From contig NC_042998.1 of assembly GCF_006345805.1 (NCBI RefSeq), positions 171,616,001 through 171,680,000 of the forward strand: a DNA stretch of 64,000 nt, in the 5' to 3' direction. The stretch is from Octopus sinensis (lineage: Eukaryota). Shown in pieces: positions 245-55,750 of this stretch. Position 1 is the stretch's first letter; each line of letters opens with the position of its first letter. The notes below the pieces were generated by a model, which saw nothing but the letters and a program-made list of their open reading frames with translations, did not search any database and was not told the DNA's origin. The position numbers were made by a program, and so were the translations under genes.

Positions 245-645
245 ATTGTAGCTGTGATACCAGTGCTGATGGCACGTAAGAATACCATCCGAATATGGCC
301 GTTGCCAGCGCTGCCCTGACTGGCCTCCATGCTGGTGGCACGTAAAATGCACCATCCGATTGTGGTCGTTGCCAGCCTCGTCTGGCCCCCATGCCGGTGG
401 CACATAAAAAGCACCATCTGATCGTGGCCGTTTGCCAGCCTCGTCTGGCACCTGTGCAGGTGGCACGTAAAAAGCACCCACTACACTCACGGAGTGGTTG
501 CGGTTAGGAAGGGAATCCAGCCGTAGAAACACTGCCAGATCAGACTGGGCCTGGCGCAGCCTTCTGGCTTCCCAGACCCCAGTTGAACCGTCCAACCCAT
601 GCTAGCATGGAAAACGGATGTTAAACGATGATGATGATGATGATG
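245..645 (+). mobile_element. RTE LINE 3' UTR end with (GAT)n tail
   Basis: Ends ...ccatgctagcatggaaaacggatgttaaac(gat)n; same family as the copy joined to RTE ORF2 at 5878-6900. Confidence 0.8.
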
Positions 646-10300: not shown

Positions 10301-12838
10301 AAACTTTACTTGATGGGGTGCATAGCTAAGCGACCAGGGAATCTCTTCTGGTTGAGCTGCTACTTGTCCACATTGAGAGGTTACAGTATTAGTGCTACAG
10401 ATGTGAGATTAGAACGTTCCAGACATTCACTTTGCTACTGACAGATATCTATATGCAGATTATAACTTATTATTTGTGTTTAGCAGTTTATCAGCATGAA
10501 AAAAGAGCTAGAGTATCACTTTAATATTAACACTGACCACAAAGCTCCAATCATCTATCAGTTTTGCTTTTGCGTATAAGCTTTGATTGTGGTTGCAACC
10601 TCTAATATACTGTGCATCCCAGATAAAATGTAAAATCTACCGACATCACTCATTGTTTGCCTATGAGGCATTTTCGACCAGTGACATGTATCAGTCGCAC
10701 TGCACTAACTTGTACATCAATTTATCTACATAGAAAGTAAGCTATCTGCATTAACTGTACTAAATGTGTTATCAAATACTCACCATATTGATAGAAGTGC
10801 CAGGTATGACATCATGGAATTGGTTCAAAAGTAACAACTGCCAAAGACGCACAAGTTCTTCTTGGGGATAGACAAATTCAGATGAAATCAACATTGCTGT
10901 AGTGCTGAGAAGTTCCGCATTGTAAAGTAAGAATTCACTCTGTCGATTATACATTTTATACTGAAAAGAAAACGTATCAATGTATGTCTGGCAGGTCACA
11001 AGTTGGTGTGGTAGAACAATGAGTGAATATTCTGTGTGAAAGCATTAAGAAGTGCTTTTATCAGTCACCTCACAAAGAACACAAATACAAACACTTCTGG
11101 CTTAACAGAAACTCTGACATGATTGGTGTACATATTGTCTATGCAAAGAAATTGAGAGATAGAATTATTGAGGTAGCCCGGATAAGTGAAAGAATAATTA
11201 AGATTATTGTTGGGAATGTGATGTGTCCATGATCTCTGTTTAATAAAAAAACTAGCAGGTTTGACAGATGATGTAAAGAATTTATCCTATAAGACAAAAG
11301 AAATTTGAAGACAGTGATATTGTCATCATAGGGATTTCAGAAGCAATAAAAAGACACCTGGTCTGCTACCAGATATACATAGGTGCTATGCGCATGAAAT
11401 AAGAAATGAAAAAGATCAATACTTCTAGAGTTCTGAGATGAAAATGACCTTCCAATTCGAAACAACTTCAAAAAATCAGCTAACTGATCACATACCTCTT
11501 GTCTGCATAAAAGATGAGATGATCATGGTTGGAATATATTTTATTATAAATCTTTTCTGATGGAGCTGACCGAGGCTAAGCAGTAACAAAAGGTATTTTC
11601 TTTATCCTTTATTTTTTTTCCTAATCCCCCTCTCAACCCCTTGTCCATCTGTAAAATTCATAAATTTGAAAATGAATGCCTACCAATAACAATTTTATCA
11701 AACTATCCCTATTGCTTGACCTTGAAATATCTGAGAGGTTTTGAGGTTTAGACTAATAAAGGAAAGGGAAAAGAAAAGTAACTAAATATTTCTAGCTCCT
11801 TAATTTGTTTGAGAAGAAAGGAGAGATGGGACCCTACTTTCAGTATTGAGTTTCCCAATCAGTAAATGTTTTTAACTTATACCAGTTATTGGAAAATAGC
11901 ACAACATACAAAATTAACTGAGCAAGTTAATTTATTTATGTAGTTACATAACCAAATACTTTCATCTTAACAATTATTTCTGATGAACTTATTTCTGACT
12001 GCCTTTTCAAACTTAAAGATGTTGAAGTGTCTGAAAGTTGAAAATAATTACCTTTCCATGTGTTGTATAGGTTCCATTATGAAGCTCAAGATAAAGTTCT
12101 CCTTTCCATTTACACAACATAGAAGTGTTTTCATTGCAAACTGCAGCAAAAAATTCTTTCGGTGAACTCATGCACACCCTGAAATCAAATTTAAAAAGAA
12201 TATGTATAATGGACATCTATACATATAGTTATAAATAACAAGAGAAATATAGTATGATAAAGTTTATTTAACCACTGGAAATGCTTATATAATGACAACT
12301 GTTTCACGACTTGATAAAACATGCACAGAGGGATTATTTTTTAACATGGATTTCTTTTAACCAAAGAACCAGCTTAATATCTGCATTAATTTAAAGATTG
12401 TTTATGTTGATGAAGACATGTAAATAATTTACTTATTATAAAATATAATAAAATATTATCTACACATGTTTTATTAAGTTGCGAAAGAACTGTTGTCATA
12501 TTAAAATTCCTAATGGTTAAATAAATTTTATCATACTATTTCTCTCCTTATTTATAACTTTACACACTTGTTATGCTTTTCTTTTGTATTGTACTATATA
12601 TTCTATATGTTTTGTAGAATTATACATTATGAAGCTTTTTTTTTTTTATGAGTATCACCAGACAAGTTGAATCCATATATTGTGGATTAAATTTTCTCCC
12701 TGTTTATTGCTGTGTTCCTTTCTGTCAAAGAGCGTAAGCTCAAAACATAAAAGACCTTTTTCATTTCCTGAGCATTAAACTAATACATTTGTTTGTTGTT
12801 TACACACCTGTCTTCATCTTTTGCTTTTTTGTAAATTC

Positions 12839-13046: not shown

Positions 13047-16000
13047 TGGGGATTAAAAAATCCTGGCAGATATCAAGTAAGCATTCTGTATAAAGGAATA
13101 AGGTTAAATTTCCAACAAGTAGATACCAGTAAATGTATGCAGAATACAAATACTAGGTAAATCCTCATGTATGATAGGTAAATCCAACAATCCTTTTGCA
13201 GAATTTGAAGAAATTCAGAGTATTTAACAACAACCAATAATATGTATGAAGAAAATCATATATTTATTTTATATCACACCTTAAAAACCAAACAACTGTT
13301 TCAACTGCATATACATACAAATATATATATATATTTACCAATACCTACTTTCGTAAGCTAATTATTCAAATTGACAAAAACATTCTTTTCCAGGCTATGC
13401 TATTGCTCACATTTTTCATGGAAAAATGTGAGCAAGAGAAATAAAATTACATGGAAAAATGTGTGGAGGCCATGGTAATAGTGGTAGAAAAGACAGAGAC
13501 AGCACACCTGTGAGCCAGAGATTGGGATATGTTGCTGAGTAATTTTATGCTAATCAGTCAAATGACCTTTCTCTAGATAGAGTCTGAGACATGTGTGTAT
13601 ATCTAGTAGCAGCACTATCTCAGATGTCAGAGCGGCATTCTTTGTGAGTCTCACCTGAGCTTTGGAGGGCTGTTGAGAGTTAATAGTTGTATTGAGGGCT
13701 GAAAAGGAAGGTCAGTTTTTAATGCTCTGAAAAGGAAGTCTGTTTTTGATGATATAAATTGGGCTATGTTGGGAATATGTAAGCTGACACTGAATTAGCT
13801 TCGCTGACTGACAGGTGATGGTCATTTAGAGAATGCGTGGGCTAAGACCACGCTTTCATTGGTCAGCTAAAGTTGAGACAGTGTCACGTGACAACTTGCT
13901 GGGGCTGCCTGCTGGAGCCTAGCAGCAGGTATTTAAAGGGAAAAAATTTGATAATCAGTCAGTCACTTGCTGACACTCTTTGACGCTACATTGAAGAGGC
14001 CAGGGAACAGAAGAAAGAAGAAGAAAGAAGACATGCACCCAAGAAAAGAGCTGAAGACACCTCCGAAAGAGGGGGGAGGGCGCCATGTCAAAACGGTGGA
14101 GGAGTAAGGGCCAAAACCGGACATGGTTCCTCCTGATGATGTCTTGAGCTAACTGGATCCTATAAAGGAGCTGTTGTGGTAGCAGACCATGAAACATGGT
14201 TGTAATTCCTTCTTGAAAGAAAGATACTCAAACATTTCATCATCATCATCATCATCATTTAACGTCCGCTTTCCATGCTAGCATGGGTTGGACGGTTCAA
14301 CTGGGGTCTGGGGAGCCCGAAAGCTGCACCAGTCCAGTCAGATCTGGCAGTGTTTCTACAGCTGGATGCCCTTCCTAACGCCAACCACTCCGAGAGTGTA
14401 GTGGGTGATTTTATGTGCCACCGACACAGGTGCCAGACGAGGCTGGCAAACGGCCACGCTCGGATGGTGTTTTTTATGTGCCACCGATACAGGTGCCAGA
14501 CGAGGCTGGCAGACGGCCACGCTCGGATGGTGTTTTTATGTGCCACCGACACAGGTGCCAGATGAGGCTGGCAAACGGCCACGATCGGATGGTGTTTGTT
14601 ACGTGCCCACAGCACGGAGGCCAGTCGATGCGGTACTGGCTACGGCCACGTTCGGATGGTTTTCTTGTGTGCCACGTGCCACCGGCACTGGTACCACAAA
14701 GATACAAATTCCATTGATGTTCATCTATTTTGATTTGTTTTGATTTTCACTTGCCTCAACAGGTCTTCACAAGTGTCACAAGAAGGAAGGTATGCACAGG
14801 TGGACTGACTACGTCCCAGGTAGGGGCCACAGGTTATGGCCTGACTAGTCTTGCTGGGTCTTCGGATGGTGTTTTTATGTGCCACTGACACAGGTGCCAG
14901 ATGAGGCTGGCGAACGGCCACGATCGGATGGTGTTTGTTACGTGCCCACAGCACGGAGGCCAGTCGATGCGGTACTGGCTACGGCCACGTTCGGATGGTT
15001 TTCTTGTGTGCCACGTGCCACCGGCACTGGTACCACAAAGATACAATTCCATTGATGTTCATCTATTTTGATTTTTTTGATTTTCACTTGCCTCAACAGG
15101 TCTTCACAAGCGTCACAAGAAGGAAGGTATGCACAGGTGGACTGACTACGTCCCAGGTAGGGGCCACAGGTTATGGCCTGACTAGTCTTGCTGGGTCTTC
15201 GGATGGTGTTTTTATGTGCCACTGACACAGGTGCCAGATGAGGCTGGCGAACGGCCACGATCGGATGGTGTTTGTTACGTGCCCACAGTACGGAGGCCAG
15301 TCGGTGCGGTACTGGCTACGGCCACGTTCGGATGGTTTTCTTGTGTGCCACCGGCACTGGTACCACAAAGATACAATTCCATTAATGTTCATCTATTTTG
15401 ATTTGTTTTGGCTTGATTTTATTTGATTTGTTTTGATTTCATTTTGATTTTGATTTTCACTTGCCTCAACAGGCCTTCACAAGTATCACAAGGAGGAAGG
15501 TATGCACAGGTGGACTGACTACGTCCCAGGTAGGGGCCATGGGATATGGCCTGACTAGTCTTGCCGGGTCTTCGGATGGTGTTTTTATGTGCCACCGACA
15601 CAGGTGCTAGATGAGGCTGGCGAACGGCCACGATCGGATGGTGTTTGTTATGTGCCCACAGCACGATGGCCAGTCGATGCGGTACTGACTACGGCCACGT
15701 TCGGATGGATTTCTTGTGTGCCACAGGCACTGGTACCACAAAGATACAAATTCCATTGATGTTCATCTATTTGATTTGATTTGATTTTCACTTGCCTCAC
15801 AGTCTTCACAAGTGTCACAAGAAGGAAGGTATGCACAGGTGGACTGACTAGTCTTGCCGGGTCTTCGGAAGGTGTTTTTATGTTCCACCGACACAGGTGC
15901 CAGATGAGGCTGGCGAACGGCCATGATCGGATGGTGTTTTGTTACGTGCCCACAGCACGGAGGCCGGTCGATGCGGAACTGGCTACGGCCACGTTCGGAT

Positions 16001-19000
16001 GGTTCTCTTGTGTGCCACCGGCACTGGTACCACAAAGTGTGTGCCACCGGCACTGGTACCACAAAGATACAGATTCCATTGATGTTCATCTATTTTGATT
16101 TGTTTTGATTTTGATTTTCACTTGCCTCAACAGGTCTTCACAAGTGTCACAAGAAGAAGGTATGCACAGGTAGACTGACTACGTCCCAGGTAGGGGCCAT
16201 GGGTTATGGCCTGACTAGTCTTGCCGGGTCTTCGGATGGTGTTTTTAGTGCCACCGACACGGTGCTAGATGAGGCTGGCGAACGGCCGCGATCGGATGGT
16301 GTTTGTCATGTGCCCACAGCATAGAGGCCAGTCGATGTGGTACTGGCTACGGCCACTTTCGGATGGTTTTTCTCTTGTGTGCCACCAGCACTGGTACCAC
16401 AAAGATACAAATTCCATTGATGTTCATCTATTTTGATTTGTTTTGATTTTCACTTGCCTCAACAGGTCTTCACAAGTGTCACAAGAAGAAGGTATGCACA
16501 GGTGGACTGACTACGTCCCAGGTAGGGGCCACAGTTATGGCCTGACTAGTCTTGCTGGTCTTCGGATGGTGTTTTTATGTGCCACTGACACAGGTGCCAG
16601 ATGAGGCTGGCGAACGGCCACGATCGGATGGTGTTTTGTTACGTGCCCACATTACGGAGGCCAGTCGGTGCGGTACTGGCTACGGCCACGCTCGGATGGT
16701 TTTCTTGTGTGCCACCGCACTGGTACCACAAAGATACAATTCCATTAATGTTCATCTATTTGATTTGTTTTGACTTGATTTTATTTGATTTGTTTTGATT
16801 TCATTTTGATTTTGATTTTCACTTGCCTCAAGGCCTTCACAAGTATCACAAGGAGAGGTATGCACAGGTGGACTGACTACGTCCCAGGTAGGGGCCATGG
16901 GATATGGCCTGACTAGTCTTGCCGGGTCTTCGGATGGTGTTTTTATGTGCCACCGACACAGGTGCTAGATGAGGCTGCGAACGGCCACGATCGGATGGTG
17001 TTTGTTATGTGCCCACAGCACGATGGCCAGTCGATGCGGTACTGACTACGGCCACGTTCGGATGGATTTCTTGTGTGCCACAGGCACTGGTACCACAAAG
17101 ATACAAATTCCATTGATGTTCATCTATTTGATTTGATTTGATTTTCACTTGCCTCAACAGGTCTTCACAAGTGTCACAAGAAGGAAGGTATGCACAGTGG
17201 ACTGACTAGTCTTGCCGGGTCTTCGGAAGGTGTTTTTATGTGCCACCGACACAGGTGCCAGATGAGGCTGGCGAACGGCCATGATTGATGGTGTTTGTTA
17301 CGTGCCCACAGCACGGAGGCCGGTCGATGCGGAACTGGCTACGGCCACGTTCGGATGGTTCTCTTGTGTGCCACCGCACTGGTACCACAAAGTGTGTGCC
17401 ACCGGCACTGGTACCACAAAGAAAGAATACAGATTCAATCATTGATGGTCATCTATTTTGATTTGTTTTGATTTTGATTTTCACTTGCCTCAACAGGTCT
17501 TCACAAGTGTCACAAGAAGGAAGGTATGCACAGGTAGACTGACTACGTCCCAGGTAGGGGCCATGGGTTATGGCCTGACTAGTCTTGCCGGGTCTTCGGA
17601 TGGTGTTTTTATGTGCCACCGACACAGGTGCTAGATGAGGCTGGCGAACGGCCGCGATCGGATGTTTTGTCATGTGCCCACAGCACGGAGGCCAGTCGAT
17701 GTGGTACTGGCTACGGCCACTTTCGGATGGTTTTCTCTTGTGTGCCACCAGCACTGGTACCACAAGATACAAATTCCATTGATGTTCATCTATTTTGATT
17801 TGTTTTGATTTTGATTTTGATTTTCACTTGCCTCAACAGGTCTTCACAAGTGTCACAAGAAGGAAGGTATGCACAGGTGGACTGACTACGTCCCAGGTAG
17901 GGGCCACAGGTTGGCCTGACTAGTCTTGCTGGGTCTTCGGATGGTGTTTTTATGTTCCACTGACACAGGTGCCAGATGAGGCTGGCGAATGGCCACGATC
18001 GGATGGTGTTTGTTACGTGCCCACAGTACGGAGGCCAGTCGGTGCGGTACTGGCTACGGCCACGTTCGGATGGTTTTCTTGTGTGCCACCGGCACTGGTA
18101 CCACAAAGATACAATTCCATTAATGTTCATCTATTTTGATTTGTTTTGACTTGATTTTATTTGATTTGTTTTGATTTCATTTTGATTTTGATTTTCACTT
18201 GCCTCAACAGGCCTTCACAAGTACACAGGAGGAAGGTATGCACAGGTGGACTGACTACGTCCCAGGTAGGGCCATGGGATATGGCCTGACTAGTCTTGCC
18301 GGGTCTTCGGATGGTGTTTTTATGTGCCACCGACACAGGTGCTAGATGAGCTGGCGAACGGCCACGATCGGATGGTGTTTGTTATGTGCCCACAGCACGA
18401 TGGCCAGTCGATGCGGTACTGACTACGGCCACGTTCGGATGGATTTCTTGTGTGCCACAGGCACTGGTACCACAAGATATCAAATTCCATTGATGTTCAT
18501 CTATTTGATTTGATTTGATTTTCACTTGCCTCAACAGGTCTTCACAAGTGTCACAAGAAGGAAGGTATGCACAGGTGACTGACTAGTCTTGCCGGGTCTT
18601 CGGAAGGTGTTTTTATGTGCCACCGACACAGGTGCCAGATGAGGCTGGCGAACGGCCATGATCGGATGGTGTTTGTTACGTGCCCACAGCACGGAGGCCG
18701 GTCGATGCGGAACTGGCTACGGCACGTCGGATGGTTCTCTTGTGTGCCACCGGCACTGGTACCACAAAGTGGTGTGCCACCGGCACTGGTACCACAAAGA
18801 TACAGATTCCATTGATGTTCATCTATTTTGATTTGTTTTGATTTTGATTTTCACTTGCCTCAACAGGTCTTCACAAGTGTCACAAGAAGGAAGGTATGCA
18901 CAGGTAGACTGACTACGTCCCTGGTAGGGGCCATGGTTATGGCCTGACTAGTCTTGCCGGGTCTTCGGATGGTGTTTTTATGTGCCACCGACACAGGTGC

Positions 19001-22000
19001 TAGATGAGGCTGGCGACGGCCGCGATCGGATGGGTTTTGTCATGTGCCCACAGCATAGAGGCCAGTCGATGTGGTACTGGCTACGGCCACTTTCGGATGG
19101 TTTTCTCTTGTGTGCCACCAGCACTGGTACCACAAAGATACAAATTCCATTGATGTTCATCTATTTTGATTTGTTTTGATTTTCACTTGCCTCAACAGGT
19201 CTTCACAAGTGTCACAAGAAGGAGGTATGCACAGGTGGACTGACTACGTCCCAGGTAGGGGCCACAGTTATGGCCTGACTAGTCTTGCTGGGTCTTCGGA
19301 TGGTGTTTTTATGTGCCACTGACACAGGTGCCAGATGAGGCTGGCGAACGGCCACGATCGGATGGTGTTTGTTACGTGCCCACAGTACGGAGGCCAGTCG
19401 GTGCGGTACTGGCTACGGCCACGTTCGGATGGTTTTCTTGTGTGCCACCGGCACTGGTACCACAAAGATACAATTCCATTAATGTTCATCTATTTTGATT
19501 TGTTTTGACTTGATTTTATTTGATTTGTTTTGATTTCATTTTGATTTTGATTTTCACTTGCCTCAACAGGCCTTCACAAGTATCACAAGGAGGAAGGTAT
19601 GCACAGGTGGACTGACTACGTCCCAGGTAGGGGCCATGGGATATGGCCTGACTAGTCTTGCCGGGTCTTCGGATGGTGTTTTTATGTGCCACCGACACAG
19701 GTGCTAGATGAGGCTTGGCGAACGGCCACGATCGGATGGTGTGTTTATGTGCCCACAGCACGATGGCCAGTCGATGCGGTACTGACTACGGCCACGTTCG
19801 GATGGATTTCTTGTGTGCCACAGGCACTGGTACCACAAAGATACAAATTCCATTGATGTTCATCTATTTGATTTGATTTGATTTTCACTTGCCTCAACAG
19901 GTCTTCACAAGTGTCACAAGAAGGAAGGTATGCACAGGTGGACTGACTAGTCTTGCCGGGTCTTCGGAAGGTGTTTTTATGTGCCACCGACACAGGTGCC
20001 AGATGAGGCTGGCGAACGGCCATGATCGGATGGTGTTTGTTACGTGCCCACAGCACGGAGGCCGGTCGATGCGGAACTGGCTACGGCCACGTTCGGATGG
20101 TTCTCTTGTGTGCCACCGGCACTGGTACCACAAAGTGTGTGCCACCGGCACTGGTACCACAAAGATACAGATTCCATTGATGTTCATCTATTTTGATTTG
20201 TTTTGATTTTGATTTTCACTTGCCTCAACAGTCTTCACAAGTGTCACAAGAAGGAAGGTATGCACAGGTAGACTGACTACGTCCCAGGTAGGGGCCATGG
20301 GTTATGGCCTGACTAGTCTTGCCGGGTCTTCGGATGGTGTTTTTATGTGCCACCGACACAGGTGCTAGATGAGGCTGGCGAACGGCCGCGATCGGATGGT
20401 GTTTGTCATGTGCCCACAGCACGGAGGCCAGTCGATGTGGTACTGGCTACGGCCACTTTCGGATGGTTTTCTCTTGTGTGCCACCAGCACTGGTACCACA
20501 AAGAAACAATTCCATTGATGTTCATCTATTTTGATTTGTTTTGATTTTCACTTGCCTCAACAGGTCTTCACAAGTGTCACAAGAAGGAAGGTATGCACAG
20601 GTGGACTGACTACGTCCCAGGTAGGGGCCACAGGTATGGCCTGACTAGTCTTGCTGGGTCTTCGGATGGTGTTTTTATGTGCCACTGACACAGGTGCCAG
20701 ATGAGGCTGGCGAACGGCCACGATCGGATGTGTTTGTTACGTGCCCACAGTACGGAGGCCAGTCGGTGCGGTACTGGCTACAGCCACGTTCGGATGGTTT
20801 TCTTGTGTGCCACCCGCACTGGTACCAACAAAGATACAATTCCATTAATGTTCATCTATTTTGATTTGTTTTGACTTGATTTTATTTGATTTGTTTTGAT
20901 TTCATTTTGATTTTGATTTTCACTTGCCTCAACAGGCCTTCACAAGTATCACAAGGAGGAAGGTATGCACAGGTGGACTGACTACGTCCCAGGTAGGGGC
21001 CATGGGATATGGCCTGACTAGTCTTGCCGGTCTTCGGATGGTGTTTTTATGTGCCACCGACACAGGTGCTAGATGAGGCTGGCGAACGGCCACGATCGGA
21101 TGGTGTTTGTTATGTGCCCACAGCACGATGGCCAGTCGATGCGGTACTGACTACGCCACGTTCGGATGGATTTCTTGTGTGCCACAGGCACTGGTACCAC
21201 AAAGATACAAATTCCATTGATGTTCATCTATTTGATTTGATTTGATTTTCACTTGCCTCAACAGGTCTTCACAAGTGTCACAAGAAGGAAGGTATGCACA
21301 GGTGGACTGACTAGTCTTGCCGGGTCTTCGGAAGGTGTTTTTATGTGCCACCGACACAGGTGCCAGATGAGGCTGGCGAACGGCCATGATCGGATGGTGT
21401 TTGTTACGTGCCCACAGCACGGAGGCCGTCGATGCGGAACTGGCTACGGCCACGTTCGGATGGTTCTCTTGTGTGCCACCCGCACTGGTACCACAAAGTG
21501 TTGCCACCGGCACTGGTACCACAAAGATACAGATTCCATTGATGTTCATCTATTTTGATTTGTTTTGATTTTGATTTTCACTTGCCTCAACAGGTCTTCA
21601 CAAGTGTCACAAGAAGGAAGGTATGCACAGGTAGACTGACTACGTCCCAGGTAGGGGCCATGGGTTATGGCCTGACTAGTCTGCCGGGTCTTCGGATGGT
21701 GTTTTTATGTGCCACCGACACAGGTGCTAGATGAGGCTGGCGACGGCCGCGATCGGATGGTGTTTGTCATGTGCCCACAGCACGGAGGCCAGTCGATGTG
21801 GTACTGGCTACGGCCACTTTCGGATGGTTTTCTCTTGTGTGCCACCAGCACTGGTACCACAAAGATACAAATTCCATTGATGTTCATCTATTTTGATTTG
21901 TTTTGATTTGATTTTGATTTTCACTTGCCTCAACAGGTCTTCACAAGTGTCACAAGAAGGAAGGTATGCACAGGTGGACTGACTACGTCCCAGGTAGGGG

Positions 22001-25000
22001 CCACAGGTTATGGCCTGACTAGTCTTGCTGGGTCTTCGGATGGTGTTTTTATGTTCCACTGACACAGGTGCCAGATGAGGCTGGCGAATGGCCACGATCG
22101 GATGGTGTTTGTTACGTGCCCACAGTACGGAGGCCAGTCGGTGCGGTACTGGCTACGGCCACGTTCGGATGGTTTTCTTGTGTGCCACCGGCACTGGTAC
22201 CACAAAGATACAATTCCATTATGTTCATCTATTTTGATTTGTTTTGACTTGATTTTATTTGATTTGTTTTGATTTCATTTTGATTTTGATTTTCACTTGC
22301 CTCAACAGCCTTCACAAGTATCACAAGGAGGAAGGTATGCACAGGTGGACTGACTACGTCCCAGGTAGGGGCCATGGGATATGGCCTGACTAGTCTTGCC
22401 GGGTCTTCGGATGGTGTTTTTATGTGCCACCGACACAGGTGCTAGATGAGGCTGGCGAACGGCCACGATCGGATGGTGTTTGTATGTGCCCACAGCACGA
22501 TGGCCAGTCGATGCGGTACTGACTACGGCCACGTTCGGATGGATTTCTTGTGTGACACAGGCACTGGTACCACAAAGATACAAATTCCATTGATGTTCAT
22601 CTATTTGATTTGATTTTGATTTTCACTTGCCTCAACAGGTCTTCACAAGTGTCACAAGAAGGAGGTATGCACAGGTGGACTGACTAGTCTTGCCGGGTCT
22701 TCGGAAGGTGTTTTTATGTGCCACCGACACAGGTGCCAGATGAGGCTGGCGAACGGCCATGATCGTATGGTGTTTGTTACGTGCCCACAGCACGGAGGCC
22801 GGTCGATGCGGAACTGGCTACGGCCACGTTCGGATGGTTCTCTGTGTGCCACCGGCACTGGTACCACAAAGATACAGATTCCATTGATGTTCATCTATTT
22901 TGATTTGTTTTGATTTTGATTTTCACTTGCCTCAACAGGTCTTCACAAGTGTCACAAGAAGGAAGGTATGCACAGGTAGACTGACTACGTCCCAGGTAGG
23001 GGCCATGGGTTATGGCCTGACTAGTCTTGCCGGGTCTTCGGATGGTGTTTTTATGTGCCACCGACACAGTGCCAGATGAGGCTGGCGAACGGCCATGATC
23101 GGATGGTGTTGTTACGTGCCCACAGCACGGAGGCCGGTCGATGCGGAACTGGCTACGGCCACGTTCGGATGGTTCTCTTGTGTGCCACCGGCACTGGTAC
23201 CACAAAGTGTGTGCCACCGGCACTGGTACCACAAAGATACAGATTCCATTGATGTTCATCTATTTTGATTTGTTTTGATTTTGATTTTCACTTGCCTCAA
23301 CAGGTCTTCACAAGTGTCACAAGAAGGAAGGTATGCACAGGTAGACTGACTACGTCCCAGGTAGGGGCCATGGGTTATGGCCTGACTAGTCTTGCCGGGT
23401 CTTCGGATGGTGTTTTTATGTGCCACCGACACAGGTGCTAGATGAGGCTGGCGAACGGCCGCGATCGGATGGTGTTTGTCATGTGCCCACAGCACTGAGG
23501 CCAGTCGATGTGGTACTGGCTACGGCCACTTTCGGATGGTTTTCTCTTGTGTGCCACCAGCACTGGTACCACAAAGATACAAATTCCATTGATGTTCATC
23601 TATTTTGATTTGTTTTGATTTTCACTTGCCTCAACAGGTCTTCACAAGTGTCACAAGAAGGAAGGTATGCACAGGTGGACTGACTACGTCCCAGGTAGGG
23701 GCCACAGGTTATGGCCTGACTAGTCTTGCTGGGTCTTCGGATGGTGTTTTTATGTGCCACTGACACAGGTGCCAGATGAGGCTGGCGAACGGCCACGATC
23801 GGATGGTGTTTGTTACGTGCCCACAGTACGGAGGCCAGTCGGTGCGGTACTGGCTACGGCCACGTTCGGATGGTTTTTCTTGTGTGCCACCGCACTGGTA
23901 CCACAAAGATACAATTCCATTAATGTTCATCTATTTGATTTGTTTTGATTTTGATTTTATTTGATTTGTTTTGATTTCATTTTGATTTTGATTTTCACTT
24001 GCCTCAACAGGCCTTCACAAGTATCACAAGGAGGAAGGTATGCACAGTGGACTGACTACGTCCCAGGTAGGGGCCATGGGATATGGCCTGACTAGTCTTG
24101 CCGGGTCTTCGGATGGTGTTTTTATGTGCCACCGACACAGGTGCTAGATGAGGCTGGCGAACGGCCACGATCGGATGGTGTTTGTTATGTGCCCACAGCA
24201 CGATGGCCAGTCGATGCGGTACTGACTACGGCCACGTTCGGATGGATTTCTTGTGTGCCACAGGCACTGGTACCACAAAGATACAAATTCCATTGATGTT
24301 CATCTATTTGATTTTGATTTTGATTTTCACTTGCCTCAACAGGTCTTCACAAGTGTCACAAGAAGGAAGGTATGCACAGGTGGACTGACTAGTCTTGCCG
24401 GGTCTTCGGAAGGTGTTTTTATGTGCCACCGACACAGGTGCCAGATGAGGCTGGCGAACGGCCATGATCGGATGGTGTTTGTTACGTGCCCACAGCACGG
24501 AGGCCGGTCGATGCGGAACTGGCTACGGCCACGTTCAGATGGATCTCTTGTGTGCCACCGGCACTGGTACCACAAAGTGTGTGCCACCGGCACTGGTACC
24601 ACAAAGATACAGATTCCATTGATGTTCATCTATTTTGATTTGTTTTGATTTTGATTTTCACTTGCCTCAACAGGTCTTCACAAGTGTCACAAGAAGGAAG
24701 GTATGCACAGGTAGACTGACTACGTCCCAGGTAGGGGCCATGGGTTATGGCCTGACTAGTCTTGCCGGGTCTTCGGATGGTGTTTTTATGTGCCACCGAC
24801 ACAGGTGCTAGATGAGGCTGGCGAACGGCCGCGATCGGATGGTGTTTGTCATGTGCCCACAGCACGGAGGCCAGTCGATGTGGTACTGGCTACGGCCACT
24901 TTCGGATGGTTTTCTCTTGTGTGCCACCAGCACTGGTACCACAAAGATACAAATTCCATTGATGTTCATCTATTTTGATTTGTTTTGATTTGATTTTGAT

Positions 25001-28000
25001 TTTCACTTGCCTCAACAGGTCTTCACAAGTGTCACAAGAAGGAAGGTATGCACAGGTGGACTGACTACGTCCCAGGTAGGGGCCACAGGTTATGGCCTGA
25101 CTAGTCTTGCTGGGTCTTCGGATGGTGTCTTTATGTGCCACTGACACAGGTGCCAGATGAGGCTGGCGAACGGCCACGATCGGATGGTGTTTGTTACGTG
25201 CCCACAGTACGGAGGCCAGTCGGTGCGGTACTGGCTACGGCCACGTTCGGATGGTTTTCTTGTGTGCCACCGCACTGGTACCACAAAGATACAATTCCAT
25301 TAATGTTCATCTATTTTGATTTGTTTTGACTTGATTTTATTTGATTTGTTTTGATTTCATTTTGATTTTGATTTTCACTTGCCTCAACAGGCCTTCACAA
25401 GTATCACAAGGAGGAAGGTATGCACAGGTGGACTGACTACGTCCCAGGTAGGGGCCATGGGATATGGCCTGACTAGTCTTGCCGGTCTTCGGATGGTGTT
25501 TTTATGTGCCACCGACACAGGTGCTAGATGAGGCTGGCGAACGGCCACGATCGGATGGTGTTTGTTATGTGCCCACAGCACGATGGCCAGTCGATGCGGT
25601 ACTGACTACGGCCACGTTCGGATGGATTTCTTGTGTGCCACAGGCACTGGTACCACAAAGATACAATTCCATTGATGTTCATCTATTTTGATTTTGATTT
25701 TGATTTTCACTTGCCTCAACAGGTCTTCACAAGTGTCACAAGAAGGAAGGTATGCACAGGTGGACTGACTAGTCTTGCTGGGTCTTCGGAAGGTGTTTTT
25801 ATGTGCCACCGACACAGGTGCCAGATGAGGCTGGCGAACGGCCATGATCGGATGGTGTTTGTTACGTGCCCACAGCACGGAGGCCGGTCGATGCGGAACT
25901 GGCTACGGCCACGTTCGGATGGTTCTCTTGTGTGCCACCGGCACTGGTACCACAAAATGTGTGCCACCGGCACTGGTACCACAAAGATACAGATTCCATT
26001 GATGTTCATCTATTTTGATTTGTTTTGATTTTGATTTTCACTTGCCTCAACAGGTCTTCACAAGTGTCACAAGAAGGAAGGTATGCACAGGTAGACTGAC
26101 TACGTCCCAGTAGGGGCCATGGGTTATGGCCTGACTAGTCTTGCCGGGTCTTCGATGGTATTTTTATGTGCCACCGACACAGGTGCTAGATGAGGCTGGC
26201 GAACGGCCGCGATCGGATGGTGTTTGTCATGTGCCCACAGCACGGAGGCCAGTCGATGTGGTACTGGCTACGGCCACTTTCGGATGGTTTTCTCTTGTGT
26301 GCCACCAGCACTGGTACCACAAAGATACAAATTCCATTGATGTTCATCTATTTTGATTTGTTTTGATTTGATTTTGATTTTCACTTGCCTCAACAGGCCT
26401 TCACAAGTCTCACAAGGAGGAAGGTATGCACAGGTGGACTGACTACGTCCCAGGTAGGGGCCATGGGTTATGGCCTGACTAGTCTTGCCGGGTCTTCGGA
26501 TGGTGTTTTTATGTGCCACCGACACAGGTGCTAGATGAGGCTGGCGAACGGCCACGATCGGATGGTGTTTGTTATGTGCCCACAGCACGATGGCCAGTGA
26601 TGCGGTACTGACTACGGCCACGTTCGGATGGATTCTTGTGTGCCACCGGCACTGGTACCACAAAGATACAAATTCCATTGATGTTCATCTATTTTGATTT
26701 GTTTTGATTTTCACTTGCCTCAACAGGTCTTCACAAGTGTCACAAGAAGGAAGGTATGTACAGGTGGACTGACTACGTCCCAGGTAGGGGCCACGGGTTA
26801 TGACCTGACTAGTCTTGCCGGGTCTTCGGATGGTGTTTTTATGTGCCATCATGTTCCCACAGCACGGAGGCCAGTCGATGTGGTACTGGCTACAACCACG
26901 TTCGGATGGTTTTCTTGTGTGCCACAGGCACTGGTACCACAAAGATACAAATTCCATTGATGTTCATCTATTTTGATTGATTTTCACTTGCCTCAGCAGA
27001 TTTACTTACAAATATTCAAAATGAACATCAACCCATCAATCTCACTGCAAAACAGAGTTATATTCTCCCCATCTGACTGACATTATAAAAATTCTGAATA
27101 GATATAAAAGAGCTGTATATAACAATGTCAAAAGTGAACCAAGCGTTGTACATACTTTGGCAGTCCACTAATGTCTTCTAATCGATTCAGTCTCTCCAGC
27201 ATATTCTCACTGTTAAAATAATAAGGAATAATAAAATTAATGCATTATAACAAATACATTCTGAAGGATATGTTTGTATTCTCTTTCTCTTCCCGCTACC
27301 TCTACAGTACCTGTTTTGTCAATTTTCCTCTCACAGCTCTCACCCACTGCATCCTCACTCTCAGCTTCTTTTTCTTAGGTTTCTCTTTCCTTGTAGCTTC
27401 TTCACCTTCCCAACACTGCTTCTCATCTTTCTCTTTTTCCCTCTGACTTTGCTCCATGACACCTACAACACTCTTTCCAACAATGACTCTTTCAGGATTC
27501 CTCTTCAACCTAGTCTAATACTCCCTCTGTCTCCTTCCCTCTCACAAACTCCACTCACATTTACTATTATAAATGTTGGCGGCAGCATAAAAACTGGATG
27601 TTAAATAACAATATGTATACATATTTAATGCTTATGTCTTGATACCATGCAACATTACACTTTATCCACAAAAATCATATAATCTATCCTTCAGTCTGAA
27701 TGAGAAGCCTTTTGTTTTTAGAAGGAGTAACAACTCCTTCAACTTTTTCCAATCCATTTTCACTGTAACTATTACACTTCCAGAACACCCACTACAAATT
27801 AGGTTACCTAAGTAACAAAAGCTATAAACTAAGTATAAGGAGCCACTCAAGTATTTGAGAGAAACTATTTTCTGGATGATCTTAGCTCAGATATCCAAGT
27901 GTACCTATTGAATTGAGAAGTCTACCTTCTCAATTAGCCTGCCTGTGATTCTTCTATACCTTTTTTATGCCAATTGTTTATACTAAACATAACATACAGA

Positions 28001-31000
28001 ACTTCTACTTACTCTTTTTCTGTATACTATGCAAGACCATTTCCCTGATGGTAGAAAACTTCTTGCACATACATTTCTTCACATTTTTTTAATGCTTTTC
28101 TACATATACATTTATATCTATTTCTTTACTACCCACAAGGAGCTAAACACAGAGAGGACAAACAAGGACAGACAAACAGATTAAGTCAATTATATCAACC
28201 CCAGTGCGTAACTGGTACTAAATTTATTGACCCCGAAAGGATGAAAGGCAAAGTCGACCTCGGCGGAATTTGAACTCAGAACGTTACGGCAGACAAAATA
28301 CGGCTACGCATTTCGCCCGGCGTGCTAACGCTTCAGCCAGCTCGCCGCCTTCATTTCTACATATACATTCATATCATTTGGCATAACCTAATCTTTCCCA
28401 TCATTTCCCTATTTTCAAATAAAGGTTATTTTGTGACTGGAATTTCCCAAATTTCATTTTATCCACTCAGTGTTTGTTATAATATTCAAAGGTTTTCACT
28501 TTATGTCTACCATACATAATTTTCCTGAAGATCAGAAACAAGAAACTTGGAATAATGATTTGTGAAGATTCAGCTTTTAGTATTGGTTATTCCATTTTCT
28601 CTATCTTCTTCACACAGAAGTATTTACATCTACATGTATGTATATGGGTGTATGTGTGTGTGTGTGTGTTATTGAAAAGATGTTGTTTTGCATTAAATCA
28701 ATCCTGAGCTAACCTATGCAAAGAAGCACTTCAAATCTAGATATCATGTCTTTGTAAGGGTATCTAGGGATACATTTTCCATGAGAACCTTTTTGTATTT
28801 AATGTAATGTCAAGGGTGAGATAGTAATATTGATGATGTGCAGTATTGACAACAGAAGATGGAACTGCAGATATTATGTAAACAATTATAAAAAAATATT
28901 CCTTGTTACTTACTCTGGTCCATTTCCCCCATCTCCATGACCAAACAGATACATGGTGTGAGACATTCGACCTTTATCTTGATAATTCTCCACTGTTTTC
29001 ATCACCTGTAAATTAGAATCAAAGTTACGTACATTTGCTGGAAAGATAATTACTTTTAAAATTAAAGCATGCACACACCCATTTTTAGGTATGCTTTTTT
29101 AACTAAGTTAAAACTGCATTTTAAAACCCTTTTGTTATCATATTTTTAATGAAATACAGTCTTTGTTTCACTTAATTCTGAAAATAATAAAGATAAATAA
29201 CTTTGTAATTGTTAAGCTGGGGTTTGGAATATAAATTAACATGAAATTCTGATGAAAAGTTTTAATTTAAATCATTTTAAAACATGGAATTTGTATGACA
29301 AAACAAGGAGCAGTTCCAGGTGAATTTGTATCAAAATGGTTAAAGATATTTTTTGCCATTCATTTTGCTTAAAAACATTTTTCAGACACTCATAATCTTT
29401 TCCAGGCTTATCTACCATTTATCTTTTCAACTTACAATTCATTAGCATTCCTAAATATCTATGTATTTTACTTGTCTTCTAATATCTAATTGCATTTTTC
29501 TCTAGAACAATGGCTGATTTAAAATTTATTATTGTCCCACTTTATCTACAAACTGCACTCATTAAACTGAATCCTGATTATGAAAATTCTCACAGAATTT
29601 ATCAAAGAATCCAGCTACTACTACCCTAATAATATTAACCTTTCAGCATTCAGATTTCTCTGTCAAATGTAATGCTTAATTATTCACATTGTTTTAAATT
29701 ATTCATGCATTATCTCATAGCTTTGAGATTTCGATGATGTGATTGTTTTATTCTTAGGATGATATTGAGGTGTAAGTGTGAGAGGCTGGATCTGGTTAGC
29801 TTGAACATAAAGCAGGTAAAATATTTTGACTTGATACAGCCAGTTTAAATGGTAACAGGTTAATGATGATAAAGATGGGGTTTATTGTAAGCATCACTTG
29901 TTGCAAATCCCAATACTGTTGCTAGTGGAAAGTATGTTACTATGAATACATAACTTCTCATTTCCACTATCGCCATCTCTTAAGCTTCACATCTATATAA
30001 GAAATCATTTCAAGGATATTAAACTTGCTGCAAAAGGTAGAATGATGTAGTGAACACTTGATGATGTTCAGTCAGCCATCTCTTGTTTCTAAATTTCCAA
30101 TCTTACTAACACAAAATTTTAATTACTCTCTTTACTCTTTTACTTGTTTCAGTCATTTGACTGCGGCCAAGCTGAAGCACCGCCTTTAGTCGAGCAAATC
30201 GACCCCGGGACTTATTCTTTGTAAGCCCAGTACTTATTCTATCAGTCTCTTTTGCTGAACCGCTAAGTGACGGGGATGTAAACACACCAGCATCGGTTGT
30301 CAAGCAATGCTAGGGGGACAAACACAGACGCACAAACACACACACGCATATATATATATATATATACATCTATACGACGGGCTTCTTTCAGTTTCCGTCT
30401 ACCAAATTCACTTACAAGGCTTTGGTTGGCCCGAGGCTATAGTAGAAGACACTTGCCCAAGGTGCCATGCAGTGGGACTGAACCCAGAACCATGTGGTTG
30501 GTAAACAAGCTACTTACCACACAGCCACTCCTACGCCTATTGTTTAACTTTCAGTTCACATCTCAACTAGAGAATTCATTTGTTCTTTTATTACTATTAG
30601 AAGGAGATTGTGAGTGATCCGGAAAACCAACAACAAATATGAACATATTTACACACCTCCTCAACTGTCCCAGTCATTTCATATGAATCTCCAGGAGGGA
30701 AGTGAGTTAGTACAGTGGTGCCATCTAGACCTTCCCACCAGAAGGTATGGTGCTAAAAAGTAAGAAAAATATAAGTTAAAAATTTATAAAATGATCATTC
30801 TTTTTATGTACGATATAACATGTAAGCCATCTTATGATGCTGGTTTGAAATAGGTCAAGTATAAAATACTGCATATTTTTCCCTTTTCTATAGGATAAAG
30901 TTGAAAGAACAGTGATGTGGAAGGAGTGGTTGTTATTTCTGGAGAGGATAGTAGTATGGGTATAGAACAGGTAAATGTGTCATAGGGGAAAAAACAAAGA

Positions 31001-34000
31001 GAGATCAAGGTGGGTGTGTAGACTCAGTAAGCTATGTAAATTGTGAACATATTTAAAAAAGGGACAAGTAAATTGGGAAGAAGTGGGAAGTGGTAGGGTC
31101 AGATTGGACATGTCAGAAGTTTCATAGGATGATGGATTGGAGGAATAAAATGGAAAAAATTGTAGGCAAGGGGAAAGAGAAAGCAGTTGGCCATGGGGCA
31201 GTTGCAATTATGTCACGAGGAAAAGCCACTATTTGTTCAGTAACTAGTGTAACTTTAATTATTTTGGCAAATACAGGTGACAAATCTAGACACATTTCAG
31301 TCTGATTTCAAGCATGTGCTAAAAGAGAGGTGTCATGTTTGAAAAATCAGGTCTTTGTTAGAATACAAGATAAGCTTAGGAATGGAAATAAATAAATGTA
31401 TAAATGTACTTACAGGAAATTTATTTACAAGATTCCAACTGATCTTTTGGGTAACAAACTTGTTTATACCACAATGCTTCATTATTTGAGGAAGCTGCAC
31501 AGAATACCCAAATGTGTCAGGTATCCATAACTGTAAAGTAAACAGTATCTTTTGTTAGGGAACAGAATGTAGTTATAACAGGATTTTCGTTTTTTTTTTT
31601 TCACAATGTTATTTGCATAATCAAATAACTTTAAGAACTTTATTTGATGTAGAAATTTTATGGAGAATCTTGCCTCTCACAATATAGAAACATTTCTCAT
31701 GGCATCAGCGAGGGAGAAGCACTGTAACAGCCACTCTGACTCATGGGGCCCATACTTGTGGATGGCAATCTCCACCATGATAGTAGTAAGCAGGGATATG
31801 GTATGGGAGCCAAGAACACCGGAAGTCTCAACTGCCACAGCCTGATCTTAAACCTGTTGGAGAGTGACTGATACCTTGACATTTTGTTTTTCTCAGCCTG
31901 ACAAGTGGTGGAGCCAGGGTTAGTAACTGACAACACAAAGTTGCCACTGGAGACGGTATCACAGCATGTGGTATCCCAGATGAGAGGCCTTCTGAATGAG
32001 AAAACTGTCATTTACAGACATATTTTTCTAGCAAGAAACAACAGTAATGTCAAGCACCCTTCTTCACCAAAAGCCAACCACATAAGAATGGCTTTATAAA
32101 AAGTGAATACACAAGTGGTGCTCCAATATGGCCACAACCTTTGGACTGAAATGCATGTGGATTGTTTCAAAGAATTTAACGGGCTAATCAAAATCGAAAT
32201 CGATCAACATCAATGGAAATTGTAGGTGTGATACCAGTGCCGGTGGCATGTAAGAGAACCATCCGAACGTGACCTTTGCCAGCACTGCCCCAACTGGCCT
32301 CCATGCCAGTGGCAAGTAAAAAGCACCATCCGATCGTGGCCGTTTGCCAGCCTTGTCTGGCACCTTTGCAGGTGGCACGTAAAAAGCACCCACTACACTC
32401 ACAGAGTGGTTGGCGTTAGGAAGGGCATCCAGCTGTAGAAACACTGCCAGATCAGACTGGGCCTGGCGCAGCCTTCTGGCTTCCCAGACTCCAGTTGAAC
32501 CGTCCAACCCATGCTAGCATGGAAAATGGACATTAAACGATGATGATGATGAACATTTCATAGCTCTGAAACACAACAATCTAGGATAATTTGAAGGTTA
32601 GGCATAACCTGATTGACGATATAGGAAAGATGAATGAGTCAGAGGTACTTTAGAGGAGGTGGCATAAGAGCAGCCAGCTCTGAGGGGAAGAAGCTACTTT
32701 TGGTAATGGAATAAAAGGTAGAGAGTAGACAGCATGCCTATAGGCTAGAGGCTGGAGCAAGTTTGTGAGTAACTTAATGCCAATCAGTTGATTGTCCTAG
32801 AAAAGAAAAAAAGAAAAAAAAAAAGGCAATAGCATAATAAATAAGATCAAAAGTATTCTTACTTCAGAACAAAACAAATCAAATTCACTTTTGAAAAACA
32901 GCTGTCCATAAAGGAATTGTCTAATGAGGGACTCACCACTAGGGATGTTGCAATCCTACAACAAAAATATATGAAGATATTAATGAATATTGCAGTTACA
33001 GATTATATTATTTAATGTAAAGAGAACTAATACCTACTGAACAAATTTAATTCAATGGTAACCAAGAAAATTTTCTGTTTTCAAAAAAAAAAAAAAAAAA
33101 CACAAACAGTTCAGGCATAGCAAACTTATAGCAATGTGCTTACCTTCTACTAACAGCAAAATAAGTCTGTAACCTAATAAAGATTCTCAGTTGCACCCAT
33201 TTTACTCTTGGTGCATAACTAATGCTATTAGATGTCACAACATTTAATTACTCAGACCTAAATGTTTGAGGTTTTGTGCTTAGTCAATAAAAAATGAATA
33301 TTTTTTTATTTCATGCTATTAATAAAATATTAAGCACACAATCTGGGACAGAAAATGAACAACAAACTCAATGACATCAGTGAGCCTTTTCATTTTTTGC
33401 CTTAAATTTATGCTTATATTGTCACATCCAATTTATATAAAATACTTAACAATTAATTTAGGTTAAGTACTTTCTGAAATTTGTCAATAAATTCAAAATT
33501 AGCTTTACCATTTCTACCCATGTACCACCAACAGGAATAAAACGTCCACTTTTCACAGCAGCTTTAATTTTTGTATAGAGTGAAGGATAATGTTGTTTTA
33601 TCCATTCAAACTGCTGAGCCTAACAGAGAGGAAAAGAAATAAGAAAATTTAGTAAGATATAATGTCAATCAAACAGCATTATATAAAAATGATAGAATAG
33701 AACTCAAAATGCCTTTTCTTTGAAACAAAGGGACTGTAGCCATTACATAACCTTTAGAAAACACAGAAACTATTAAATTAATATTTCATTTATTTAGTGT
33801 GTCAAAACTTTTGTTGCATATCTACAATCTAATAACTGACACTATTCCACTGCAATTCAGTTAATGATTGGATTGTGATTGTGCATTGAAAATTCTGATA
33901 CCTGAATAAATGTTTTTGTGTGTTTTTAATATTCAGCTAGAATAAAACTAAAAAAAAAAAACTATGAAAATACATGAAAATACAAAAATTGATATGGAAA

Positions 34001-48370: not shown

Positions 48371-49132
48371 GCAATACTTCTATCATCTATCTTTCTCTTT
48401 ACACGATGAGGGTAGAGATTCTTTGTTGGTTAGGAAAAACAAGAGTTATTTAATTTGGCAATGGAAGAAGGAGCTAAATGATTTCTTATCAGTTAGATTT
48501 TATTTTTCTGTTTAAGTAATAACCTAAGTTACTTAATAAGTTAAACAAAACAAAAATAATGTAACAATTATGTCTAGTAGCAAAATCACATTATTGTTGG
48601 TGATACAGCATTCTGTTGCAGCTATATGACATGTTTGTGACTAAGTGATGTGTGATGACGATTCACTCCTGAACTGAAATAGGATCCCAGCATCTGTATC
48701 ATAGATGGTTATTTGGACCACTCCTAACAAAAGCCAGAGCTTCCTTCGACCACTACATAAAAAGTATTAAGACAAAAATGTTATTTAGATATACTTTCAT
48801 TTTAGTTGTTTACACTATTTTATGCTTGTTAATACTCTTATACATTCAAAGTTCACAAATTTCCTTATTTAAATTATGAATCATATTCCTTTCGATAATA
48901 TCAATATGATTACAAAACTTCTTTGTAGACGATATTTTCGGTTTGGTCAACACTAATTTTCAAATTACTGGAGTCTGTTGCTCTACTCATTGCGATGTAT
49001 AACTGGCCGTGTGTAAACATCGGAGTGGGTAAAAATACACCTACATGATCTAAAGTCTGGCCCTGTGCCTTGTTTTGCTGTGAATGCATGAGCGGAATCT
49101 TTAGGGCTGCAAAAAATCAAACTAAGACTTAC

Positions 49133-54529: not shown

Positions 54530-54768
54530 CTCTCACACCTACACACACACACACACACATATATACACACACTGGTACATATGCACTCACATATACTCAT
54601 ACATAGATACAAAAGCACATACATACACAAACACATACATATACACAGAGTAATATAATGCCTCTCACCACCAAATCAAACTACAGCAGGTAAACTGTCC
54701 ACACCACTCCTTTACACAGACACTACCACACACACACACACCACACACACACACACCACACACACACA
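54530..54768. repeat. (CA)n / (CATA)n compound microsatellite
   Basis: Directly visible. Confidence 0.9.
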
Positions 54769-54839
54769 GGTGCCATTTTTGTACTCTCCTACTTTTAAAA
54801 ACCACTTTCTCTATCTCTCTCCACTTCTGGGCACTTCAG

Positions 54840-55750
54840 TCATGGAATCACACAAGAAGTACTGTCTCAAAAGTACTGACAGCCTTTGGGAAAGTGGGAA
54901 AGTATCACAAAAGTACAGCTCACAAAATTACTGCCAGGCTTAATGGCCACCTCGAGAACCCAGTTTCCCCAAAAACTGTTCACCGGGAGCTGCCCAAAGC
55001 CGGATTTCATGGGAGGGCTTCAATCAGAAAACAGCTAATTTCAACAACAAACGTTGCAAAGTGTTTAGAGTGGAATAAAAACCTACAGAATTGGTCCCTA
55101 GAGCAGTGGAAGAACGTTATTTTCTTGGACGAATCATCCTTTACCTCATTTCCGACCACCAGCTGAGTATATGTGTGGAAACAGCCAAAAGAAGCATTTG
55201 ACCCAGACTGCCTTCTTCCAACTGTTAAAGATGGAGGAGGGTAATTGATGATCAGGTGGGGGGGTGCTATATCTTGGAAATCCGCCAGACCAACGGTTTC
55301 CCTTCATGGCAAAATTAATAGTCAAGACTATTTAAGCATTTTATCTTATCAAATTCATCCAATGGTTGCGGAACTGTCTCTGGAGGGAAACACAATCTTT
55401 CAGGATGATAATGCACCAGTTCACACAGCTATGGCATGAGGAACATTCTAGTGAAGTTGAACATCTTATCTGGCCACCACAGTCCCCAGATGTCAATATT
55501 ATTGAACATTTATGGTGCATTTTAGAAAAACAAGTAAGGAGTTGATATCCTCCACCATCATCACTACAAGAACTGGAGACTGTTGTAGCTGAAGAATGGA
55601 CAAAAATTCCTTTGGAAACAATTTAAACTTTGTACGAGTCCATACCTCATAGAATTCAAGCTGTAATTACTACCAAAGGCAGTCTTACCCCATATTAAAA
55701 TAAATTTGTTTGAAATCTTAAGGTGTTTCCATTATTTTGTCCAGCCTCTG
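54840..55750 (+). mobile_element. Decayed Tc1-like (DD34E) transposon, 5'-truncated
   Basis: VIFLDESSF, IFQDDNAPVH, WPPQSPDVNIIEHLW; right end ttattttgtccagcctctg|TA. Confidence 0.92.

Follow-up and report, generated by a model that had tools for sequence, protein, structure and literature searches.

A LINE 3' untranslated region amplified into a higher-order-repeat array inside an intron of a MAN2C1-like gene of Octopus sinensis

How does a fragment of a transposon become satellite-like DNA, and can the stages be read at a single locus? The question is raised by a tandem array in a 64-kb stretch of the Octopus sinensis genome (NCBI RefSeq assembly GCF_006345805.1, contig NC_042998.1, positions 171,616,001 to 171,680,000 of the forward strand). 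This whole stretch is called the window below, and all coordinates are positions in it; the genome-level data are those of one assembly. A first-pass annotation had proposed that a piece of the 3' untranslated region (UTR) of a long interspersed nuclear element (LINE) was amplified here into a higher-order-repeat array within an intron of the gene for alpha-mannosidase 2C1 (MAN2C1). This proposal held: the units are linked by a single junction, they fall into four phased types, and the surrounding gene, which is GH38/Ams1-like, is spliced in frame.

The array occupied positions 14238-26999 (12.8 kb) as one sharply bounded block. Its GC content was 0.50, compared with 0.36 in the rest of the window; along the sequence, GC stayed at 0.49-0.52 over 14001-27000 and ranged elsewhere from about 0.27 to 0.47, mostly near 0.35. 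Tandem Repeats Finder (TRF) reported periods of 332 and 372-373 bp throughout the block, together with nested repeats of 62-63 bp, 29 bp, and about 5 bp. Ungapped self-matching of the block gave peaks at lags of ~1364-1380, 2727-2738, 4097, and 5463. Four periods are nested in the array, of ~5, 62, 339, and 1366 bp.

Thirty-seven head-to-tail units, the number first reported, could be phased on the junction that links them. It is present in 36 copies, in which TCTTC is joined to GGATGGTG or to a form one change away. With at most one mismatch allowed, TCTTCGGATGGTG was found 35 times, every time inside the array, where 0.03 occurrences were expected by chance; the 36th copy, near 26148, has a 1-bp deletion. 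Within the window the junction is confined to the array, and its 26-nt sequence is GTCTTGCYGGGTCTTCGGATGGTGTT. On the sense strand it reads ...CACCATCC followed directly by GAAGACCC... The bases GA (TC/GA) match both parental contexts at this point and the homology extends no further, so the join has a 2-nt microhomology. Head-to-tail units with a common junction, together with the homology of the unit to a defined segment of a transposable element (TE) described next, identify the block as a TE-derived tandem array.

The parent of the units could be recognized by comparison with an unamplified copy of the LINE in Octopus vulgaris (locus L001, OX597814.1, L001 9000-11826). There, the open reading frame (ORF) ends at 11243 (...DRDLWKYAV and the stop), and a 3' UTR with an (ATG)n tail continues to 11826. 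The array monomer aligned to L001 ~11246-11607 with 85-88% identity, and the homologous stretch occurs only once in that copy. It begins there at GAAGACCC, 2 nt after the TGA stop, and the monomer corresponds to nt 3 to ~340 of the unamplified UTR. Since the only alignment to the O. vulgaris UTR starts next to the stop codon, the repeat unit is made up of the first ~339 nt of the 3' UTR, up to the edge of one of the internal 62-nt subrepeats.

The true 3' end and the tail of the element were also said to be kept at 14238, and the alignment of 14238-14258 with the other window copies and with O. vulgaris agrees. On the minus strand, the left end of the array reads ...CATGCTAGCATGGAAAGCGGACGTTAAA(TGA)n. 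The same 3' end and tail are present at 263-645 (+), 32191-32552 (+), and from 5873 onward (-), as well as in the O. vulgaris copy. The unamplified terminal part of the array was 84-85% identical to the first two of these copies and 85.6% identical to L001 11450-11826 by BLAST. As the native form of the unit, the first-pass annotation had pointed to the copy that starts near 5873. The sequence on which it relied, gtcttc followed by tgaagcacag, is indeed present at 6415-6430; however, 5873-6430 is only ~66% identical to the monomers and belongs, judging from its sequence, to a distant subfamily with a fast-evolving UTR, which makes L001 the better comparator. Its ORF end was 82% identical in protein to that of the O. 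vulgaris copy, and beyond the UTR the copy runs on into the C-terminal part of the reverse transcriptase (RT) ORF.

An RT ORF, a 3' UTR, a simple-repeat tail, and copies 5'-truncated at different points place the parent among the LINEs, the retrotransposons without long terminal repeats (LTRs). A protein search with the RT sequence from the window returned RVT_1 and PHD-finger proteins, the closest named ones from Octopus bimaculoides (76%) and Octopus vulgaris (71%). Pfam found RVT_1 twice (E 4.8e-21 and 2e-18), plus a PHD-like finger. Trinucleotide-repeat tails are typical of RTE elements, and we take the C-terminal motif RGRPRKTW...DR..W of this LINE to resemble that of BovB/RTE. From its sequence, membership of the parent in the RTE clade is plausible. 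Octopus RTE elements have ~600-nt UTRs, and microsatellites are common in RTE (Petrosino et al., PMC9115989).

Two further observations concern the parent. Its 3' UTR is itself a minisatellite, with 61-66-bp subrepeats in 2-5 copies, the number of which varies between element copies and between species (window 14409-14607 and 270-478; L001 11451-11664 and 16503-16656). In addition, protein P0159, attributed in its label to a Herbaspirillum metagenome-assembled genome, is 66% identical to this octopus-type LINE RT; it is probably eukaryotic contamination of the Herbaspirillum bin.

The four monomer types in about eight rounds that had been described, and the four clades that had been named as a test of them, were both recovered. 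Average-linkage clustering of 35 SpeI-to-SpeI units gave the cycle ABCD eight times, plus one extra C at ~22683-23039. Identity was 98.1% between units four apart, as opposed to 94.2-94.7% at lags of one to three. Bootstrap values for the bipartitions were 100 for A, 100 for B, 90 for C, and 59 for D, the least derived type. The type consensuses were 4.4-5.7% apart, and the type-specific indels were common to all members of a type; pairwise differences among the eight higher-order repeat copies spanned 0.37-2.87%. The order of monomers is thus fixed and the blocks are more alike than neighboring monomers, which defines a higher-order repeat.

The edge monomers, described as atypical, were indeed so: M0 and e1 at one end and the partial unit at the other were set apart from the four types, and e2 was B-like but lacked the deletion of type B (Table 1). 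M0, which stands in its native position next to the terminal part of the element, was 99.1% identical to e1, ~96% identical to each type consensus, and 88.1% identical to the native O. vulgaris UTR. The partial unit was the most diverged of all (91-94.5% identity), lacked one 62-bp subrepeat, and stopped mid-monomer against unique intron sequence.

Table 1. Features of the array, of the host gene next to it, and of related LINE copies in the window
Feature	Position	Strand	Basis
Element tail, (ATG)n on the sense strand, 7 units; (CAT)7 run on the plus strand	14238-14258	-	Read directly; aligns with tails of three other window copies and the O. vulgaris copy
Unamplified 3'-terminal part of LINE 3' UTR: unique ~150-nt end plus 62-63-bp subrepeats (14409-14607, 3.2 copies)	14259-14524	-	TRF, alignment, BLAST
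M0, monomer-homologous stretch in native position, 339 bp	14525-14863	-	Unit comparison
e1, first repeated unit, atypical edge monomer; 8-bp insertion in common with M0	14864-15200	-	M0+e1 bipartition, bootstrap 100
Eight higher-order repeats (33 monomers) of four types	15201-26497	-	SpeI spacing, clustering, consensus comparison, bootstrap
Starts of the higher-order repeats	15201, 16564, 17939, 19298, 20664, 22038, 23739, 25120	-	
Type A, ~372 bp: ~40-bp (TTTGA)-like expansion, AseI			
Type B, ~294 bp: 37-bp deletion			
Type C, ~366 bp: 29-bp duplication			
Type D, 330-345 bp: EagI			
Extra C-type monomer, 337 bp, without the 29-bp duplication; makes the sixth repeat ABCCD (1.70 kb)	22703-23039	-	Clustering, unit comparison
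e2, edge monomer, 98.3% identical to B yet without its 37-bp deletion	26498-26827	-	B+e2 bipartition, bootstrap 98
Terminal partial unit, 172 bp, on the 5' side of the element	26828-26999	-	Unit comparison
Small MAN2C1-like exon (18 residues; gap 476-493 of protein P0001 between tblastn hits)	27156-27211	-	AG acceptor, GT donor
Next MAN2C1-like exon	12022-12180	-	tblastn; joins in frame to the 27156-27211 exon (after ...LPK)
Older, divergent copy of the same LINE lineage: ORF C-terminus, 3' UTR, tail; monomer region once	5873-7300	-	BLAST, alignment
5'-truncated 3' end, same LINE family, 85% identical to array head, no junction	263-645	+	
5'-truncated 3' end, same LINE family, 84% identical to array head, no junction	32191-32552	+	

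Restriction sites followed the same periodicity. SpeI (ACTAGT) had 36 sites in the block, one per monomer as predicted, with a spacing that cycled through 373/293/367/331-345 bp. The bands of ~1.37 kb and one of ~1.7 kb foreseen for EagI matched its eight sites, which lie 1361-1378 bp apart except for one step of 1712 bp. The same prediction for AseI failed: the enzyme has seven sites in the block, being absent from one of the eight A units, and the extra fragment is 3.07 kb (a step of 3075 bp) rather than ~1.7 kb.

The ratio of observed to expected CpG was 0.68 in the array, as opposed to 0.29 and 0.33 in its left and right flanks. The array had been called CpG rich on this ground, correctly, but the richness is not specific to it. 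Unamplified UTR copies had ratios of 0.66, 0.53, and 0.59 in the window and 0.62 in O. vulgaris; because they are equally rich, the array must have inherited its CpG content from the parent UTR, and we reject the view that this is a property of the array itself. The RT ORF of the copy at 59625-61082 had a ratio of 0.28 and the window background one of 0.32. CpG transitions accounted for 10 of the 69 within-type substitutions in the array. Germline methylation, through which the gene body became depleted in CpG, may not reach the parent UTR.

The host gene was identified from 15 collinear minus-strand exons that match GH38 alpha-mannosidase 2C1 proteins (tblastn). Pfam assigned Glyco_hydro_38N (1e-29), the Ams1-like first domain (2e-16), and Alpha-mann_mid (1.3e-11); Glyco_hydro_38C, with an E value of 0.0024, failed its cut-off. 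With best hits named alpha-mannosidase 2C1, the gene is of the MAN2C1/Ams1 type of cytosolic alpha-mannosidase (GH38). In a homology search of public proteins, no cephalopod MAN2C1 protein was among the listed matches, all of which were 567 aa or shorter.

The element and the array are in sense orientation relative to the gene, the flanking exons are intact, and their splice sites are canonical. The array-bearing intron measures 14,975 bp, 12,762 bp of which are array; the remaining 13 introns that could be mapped range from 416 to 2,645 bp. The array was said to end mid-monomer at 26999, 157 bp from the donor of exon 14. Its end and its distance to the donor (at 27156) were correct, but the small exon in question is the 13th coding exon among those mapped. 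As a separate observation, each higher-order repeat contains a single AATAAA on the sense strand of the gene, located in the type A expansion, and the intron therefore holds eight potential polyadenylation signals (plus-strand TTTATT at 15418, 16780, 18156, 19515, 20881, 22254, 23956, and 25336).

How did this array arise? In our view, it likely derives from a transposon and expanded at its present site, with no demonstrated host function. A 5'-truncated copy of the RTE-like LINE would have come to lie, in sense orientation, in the intron of the MAN2C1-like gene of an octopod genome. In a non-homologous tandem duplication with 2-nt microhomology, the UTR start, 2 nt past the stop codon, would then have been fused to the end of one of the internal 62-nt subrepeats, giving rise to a ~339-bp unit and its single junction. 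The array could have expanded as its units underwent unequal exchange or replication slippage, the units diverging by ~5% and gaining type-specific indels, until a block of four adjacent units was amplified about eightfold into the higher-order repeat. The edge units would have escaped homogenization, and the intron would have lengthened from ~2.2 kb to 15 kb, presumably as a neutral change.

The order of these events is suggested by two well-separated levels of divergence, which point to a history in two steps: multiplication and drift of monomers, followed by amplification of the four-monomer block. The fixation of indels within types, their absence from edge units, and the ABCCD variant fit this history as well. 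A study of O. vulgaris repeats equated a Jukes-Cantor (JC) distance of 0.065 with ~18 million years (PMC13282606). The block amplification may date to ~0.5-3 million years ago and the monomer divergence to ~6-8 million years ago; these dates are rough because concerted evolution resets such clocks.

Several observations weigh against growth in place from a single-copy insertion. At 26999, its 5' end, the array breaks off within a monomer; the adjoining sequence is unique intron without any trace of the ORF, and the standard junction is already present in the outermost unit. Since a partial unit cannot yield full units, such an origin needs an extra deletion at the 5' end; otherwise, the first duplication predated or accompanied the insertion. 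The array ends also carry no recognizable target-site duplication, sharing AAAT alone. The resemblance TTTG(TA)AGTA at the two ends was considered for this role and rejected, being in the wrong register and judged a chance similarity in AT-rich DNA. Finally, copy number, age, and in-place growth are all deduced from one assembly.

It is possible, as a tentative alternative, that the seed was already a multimer when it was inserted. The source LINE could have carried a duplicated 3' UTR, or the RT could have jumped between templates during target-primed reverse transcription, reaching the start of the UTR by the stop codon and resuming in a downstream 62-nt subrepeat. Position 26999 would then be an ordinary 5' truncation, and later growth and the formation of the higher-order repeat would still have occurred in place. 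A multimeric seed accounts for the mid-monomer 5' end and the lack of ORF sequence without an extra deletion, and it agrees with the standard junction in the outermost unit and with a repeat unit that begins 2 nt after the stop codon. Non-LTR reverse transcriptases are known to jump between templates. Moreover, another copy of the lineage in the window has a ~330-bp duplication of its ORF end, and a third copy has a 67-bp RT piece re-attached. However, the junction is absent from both other copies that span the start of the UTR (5873-7300 and L001 9000-11826), no target-site duplication marks 26999 as the original end of the insertion, and a deletion at the array edge is an equally simple explanation. 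The stronger claim that the RT of the LINE itself made the first junction, so that the element landed as a ready-made multimer 5'-truncated at 26999, seems to us rather unlikely. If it were true, this LINE lineage would seed satellite arrays as a by-product of retrotransposition, and other loci would carry independent tandem duplications of the UTR or ORF end with breakpoints near the stop, as the duplication at 6522-7174 hints.

That duplication belongs to the copy at 5873-7300, in which ~330 bp of the C-terminal coding part of the ORF is repeated in tandem (6522-6844 and 6854-7174, 75-77% identity). Independent of the one in the array and similar to it in length, this second duplication likewise lies near the 3' end of the LINE. 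In the RT-bearing copy at 59625-61120 (+), a 67-bp upstream piece of the RT (60004-60070) recurs at 61053-61119 with 96% identity; it sits right after the C-terminal part of the ORF and is followed by an (AT)n run. This copy may be rearranged or template switched. With two copies in the window rearranged near the ORF end, an origin of the array linked to retrotransposition is worth testing.

An artefact of assembly, the true locus having far fewer units, or more of them, we consider very unlikely. Units of 1.37 kb at 98-99.6% identity are indeed hard to assemble, but each higher-order repeat copy has substitutions and microsatellite lengths of its own, a single copy shows the order ABCCD, and the AseI site is missing from one A unit; artefactual copies would tend to be identical. 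The substitutions, the length differences, and the ABCCD variant mark these as real, separately evolving copies. The structure of the array is thus real even if the exact number of units is off.

Least probable of these explanations, and scarcely credible to us, is that the array represents a single locus of a satellite family, dispersed or functional (centromeric or heterochromatic DNA, a source of small RNAs, or an intronic regulator of MAN2C1), and was brought in by recombination or by reintegration of circular DNA. In favor of this, the monomer of ~340 bp is near twice the nucleosome length, the GC and CpG contents stand out within a CpG-poor gene body, and each higher-order repeat has one sense-strand AATAAA. 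Against it, the array is only 12.8 kb long and lies in an intron of an intact gene, both of which argue against a centromeric satellite in particular; it is also still joined to the 3' end and tail of its own element and has the same CpG content as unamplified copies. Double insertion of whole elements is excluded because no tail lies between units. A known structured RNA (tRNA, 5S, or snRNA) as the source was likewise rejected, as Rfam at gathering thresholds had no match anywhere in the window.

Other repeats surround the array. A diverged LINE RT/PHD fragment at 27680-28063 (-), in the intron immediately 5' of the small exon, has 36% protein identity to the O. vulgaris RT. It was considered as the missing ORF part of the array and rejected in view of this low identity, its membership in another family, and the exon that lies in between; it is a separate, old element. 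Another intron of the MAN2C1-like gene holds a cluster of 20-30-bp and 73-bp tandem repeats (37387-38950) with the motif CAAACTGGTC...AAACCAG. Upstream of the gene, remnants of other transposons abound (48913-49116, 54654-55622, and 59038-59562); judged by eye, they are a fragment resembling a helicase, a Tc1/mariner-like transposase, and, on the minus strand, another RT.

Searches of public collections added little. Ten array ORFs had no exact counterpart in public protein collections, and five ORFs that span the junction, taken from different frames, gave no homology match at E<=0.001; neither result bears on other loci. Fifteen matches to the junction in JGI metagenomes were all limited to 18-26 nt, as expected by chance. 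GTDB genomes and IMG/VR had none, and a control motif from the conserved 3' end of the element was absent from them too. Since octopods are not represented in these DNA collections, failure to find the junction there is uninformative. Searches of the published literature yielded no description of satellite DNA from octopus or any other cephalopod, and a 2026 repeat annotation of O. vulgaris makes no mention of satellites (PMC13282606).

Both satellites of LINE 3' UTR origin and non-centromeric higher-order repeats are already established, and the array changes no existing knowledge. It is, however, unusually legible, with the parent end, the founding junction, the diverged monomers, and the later four-monomer amplification all at one locus. 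It may therefore serve as a teaching or model case of how a transposon fragment becomes satellite-like DNA, and possibly as a copy-number marker in octopods. Its practical relevance is modest: it makes one MAN2C1 intron about seven times longer, and the eight sense-strand AATAAA motifs could matter for transcript processing.

Several known systems resemble the array in part. Satellites from LINE 3' ends include the common cetacean satellite (L1 3' UTR), chicken HinfI/SCR1 (CR1 3' UTR and part of ORF2), and Drosophila 18HT (HeT-A 3' non-coding region) (PMC9659126). As in the array, their unit is a head-to-tail piece of a non-LTR 3' non-coding region. Unlike them, the array is a 12.8-kb intronic locus that is continuous with the terminal region and tail of its element, has a four-monomer higher-order repeat, and is found in a cephalopod. 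PisTR-A and the Lathyrus satellites derive from hypervariable tandem repeats in the 3' UTRs of Ogre LTR retrotransposons (PMC9659126; PMC7004042). There, too, the parent 3' UTR already had short tandem subrepeats (62 bp here) that vary between copies, and the unit was drawn from that region. However, the parent of the array is a LINE rather than an LTR element, and its new 339-bp unit arose through a non-homologous junction rather than by expansion of the 62-bp subrepeat.

Tandem dimers of TEs are established as satellite seeds for unequal exchange (McGurk and Barbash 2018, PMC5932611). The array agrees with this model in that a TE-derived tandem dimer would be the substrate expanded by unequal exchange. 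Whole-element double insertions, however, leave tails or ends between the units, whereas the units of the array are internal UTR fragments with no tails. In its higher-order structure, the array resembles alpha-satellite: monomer types are several percent apart, blocks are 97-99.6% identical, and edge monomers are more diverged. Alpha-satellite is centromeric and megabase-scale and has 171-bp monomers, whereas the array comprises eight repeats in the intron of a gene.

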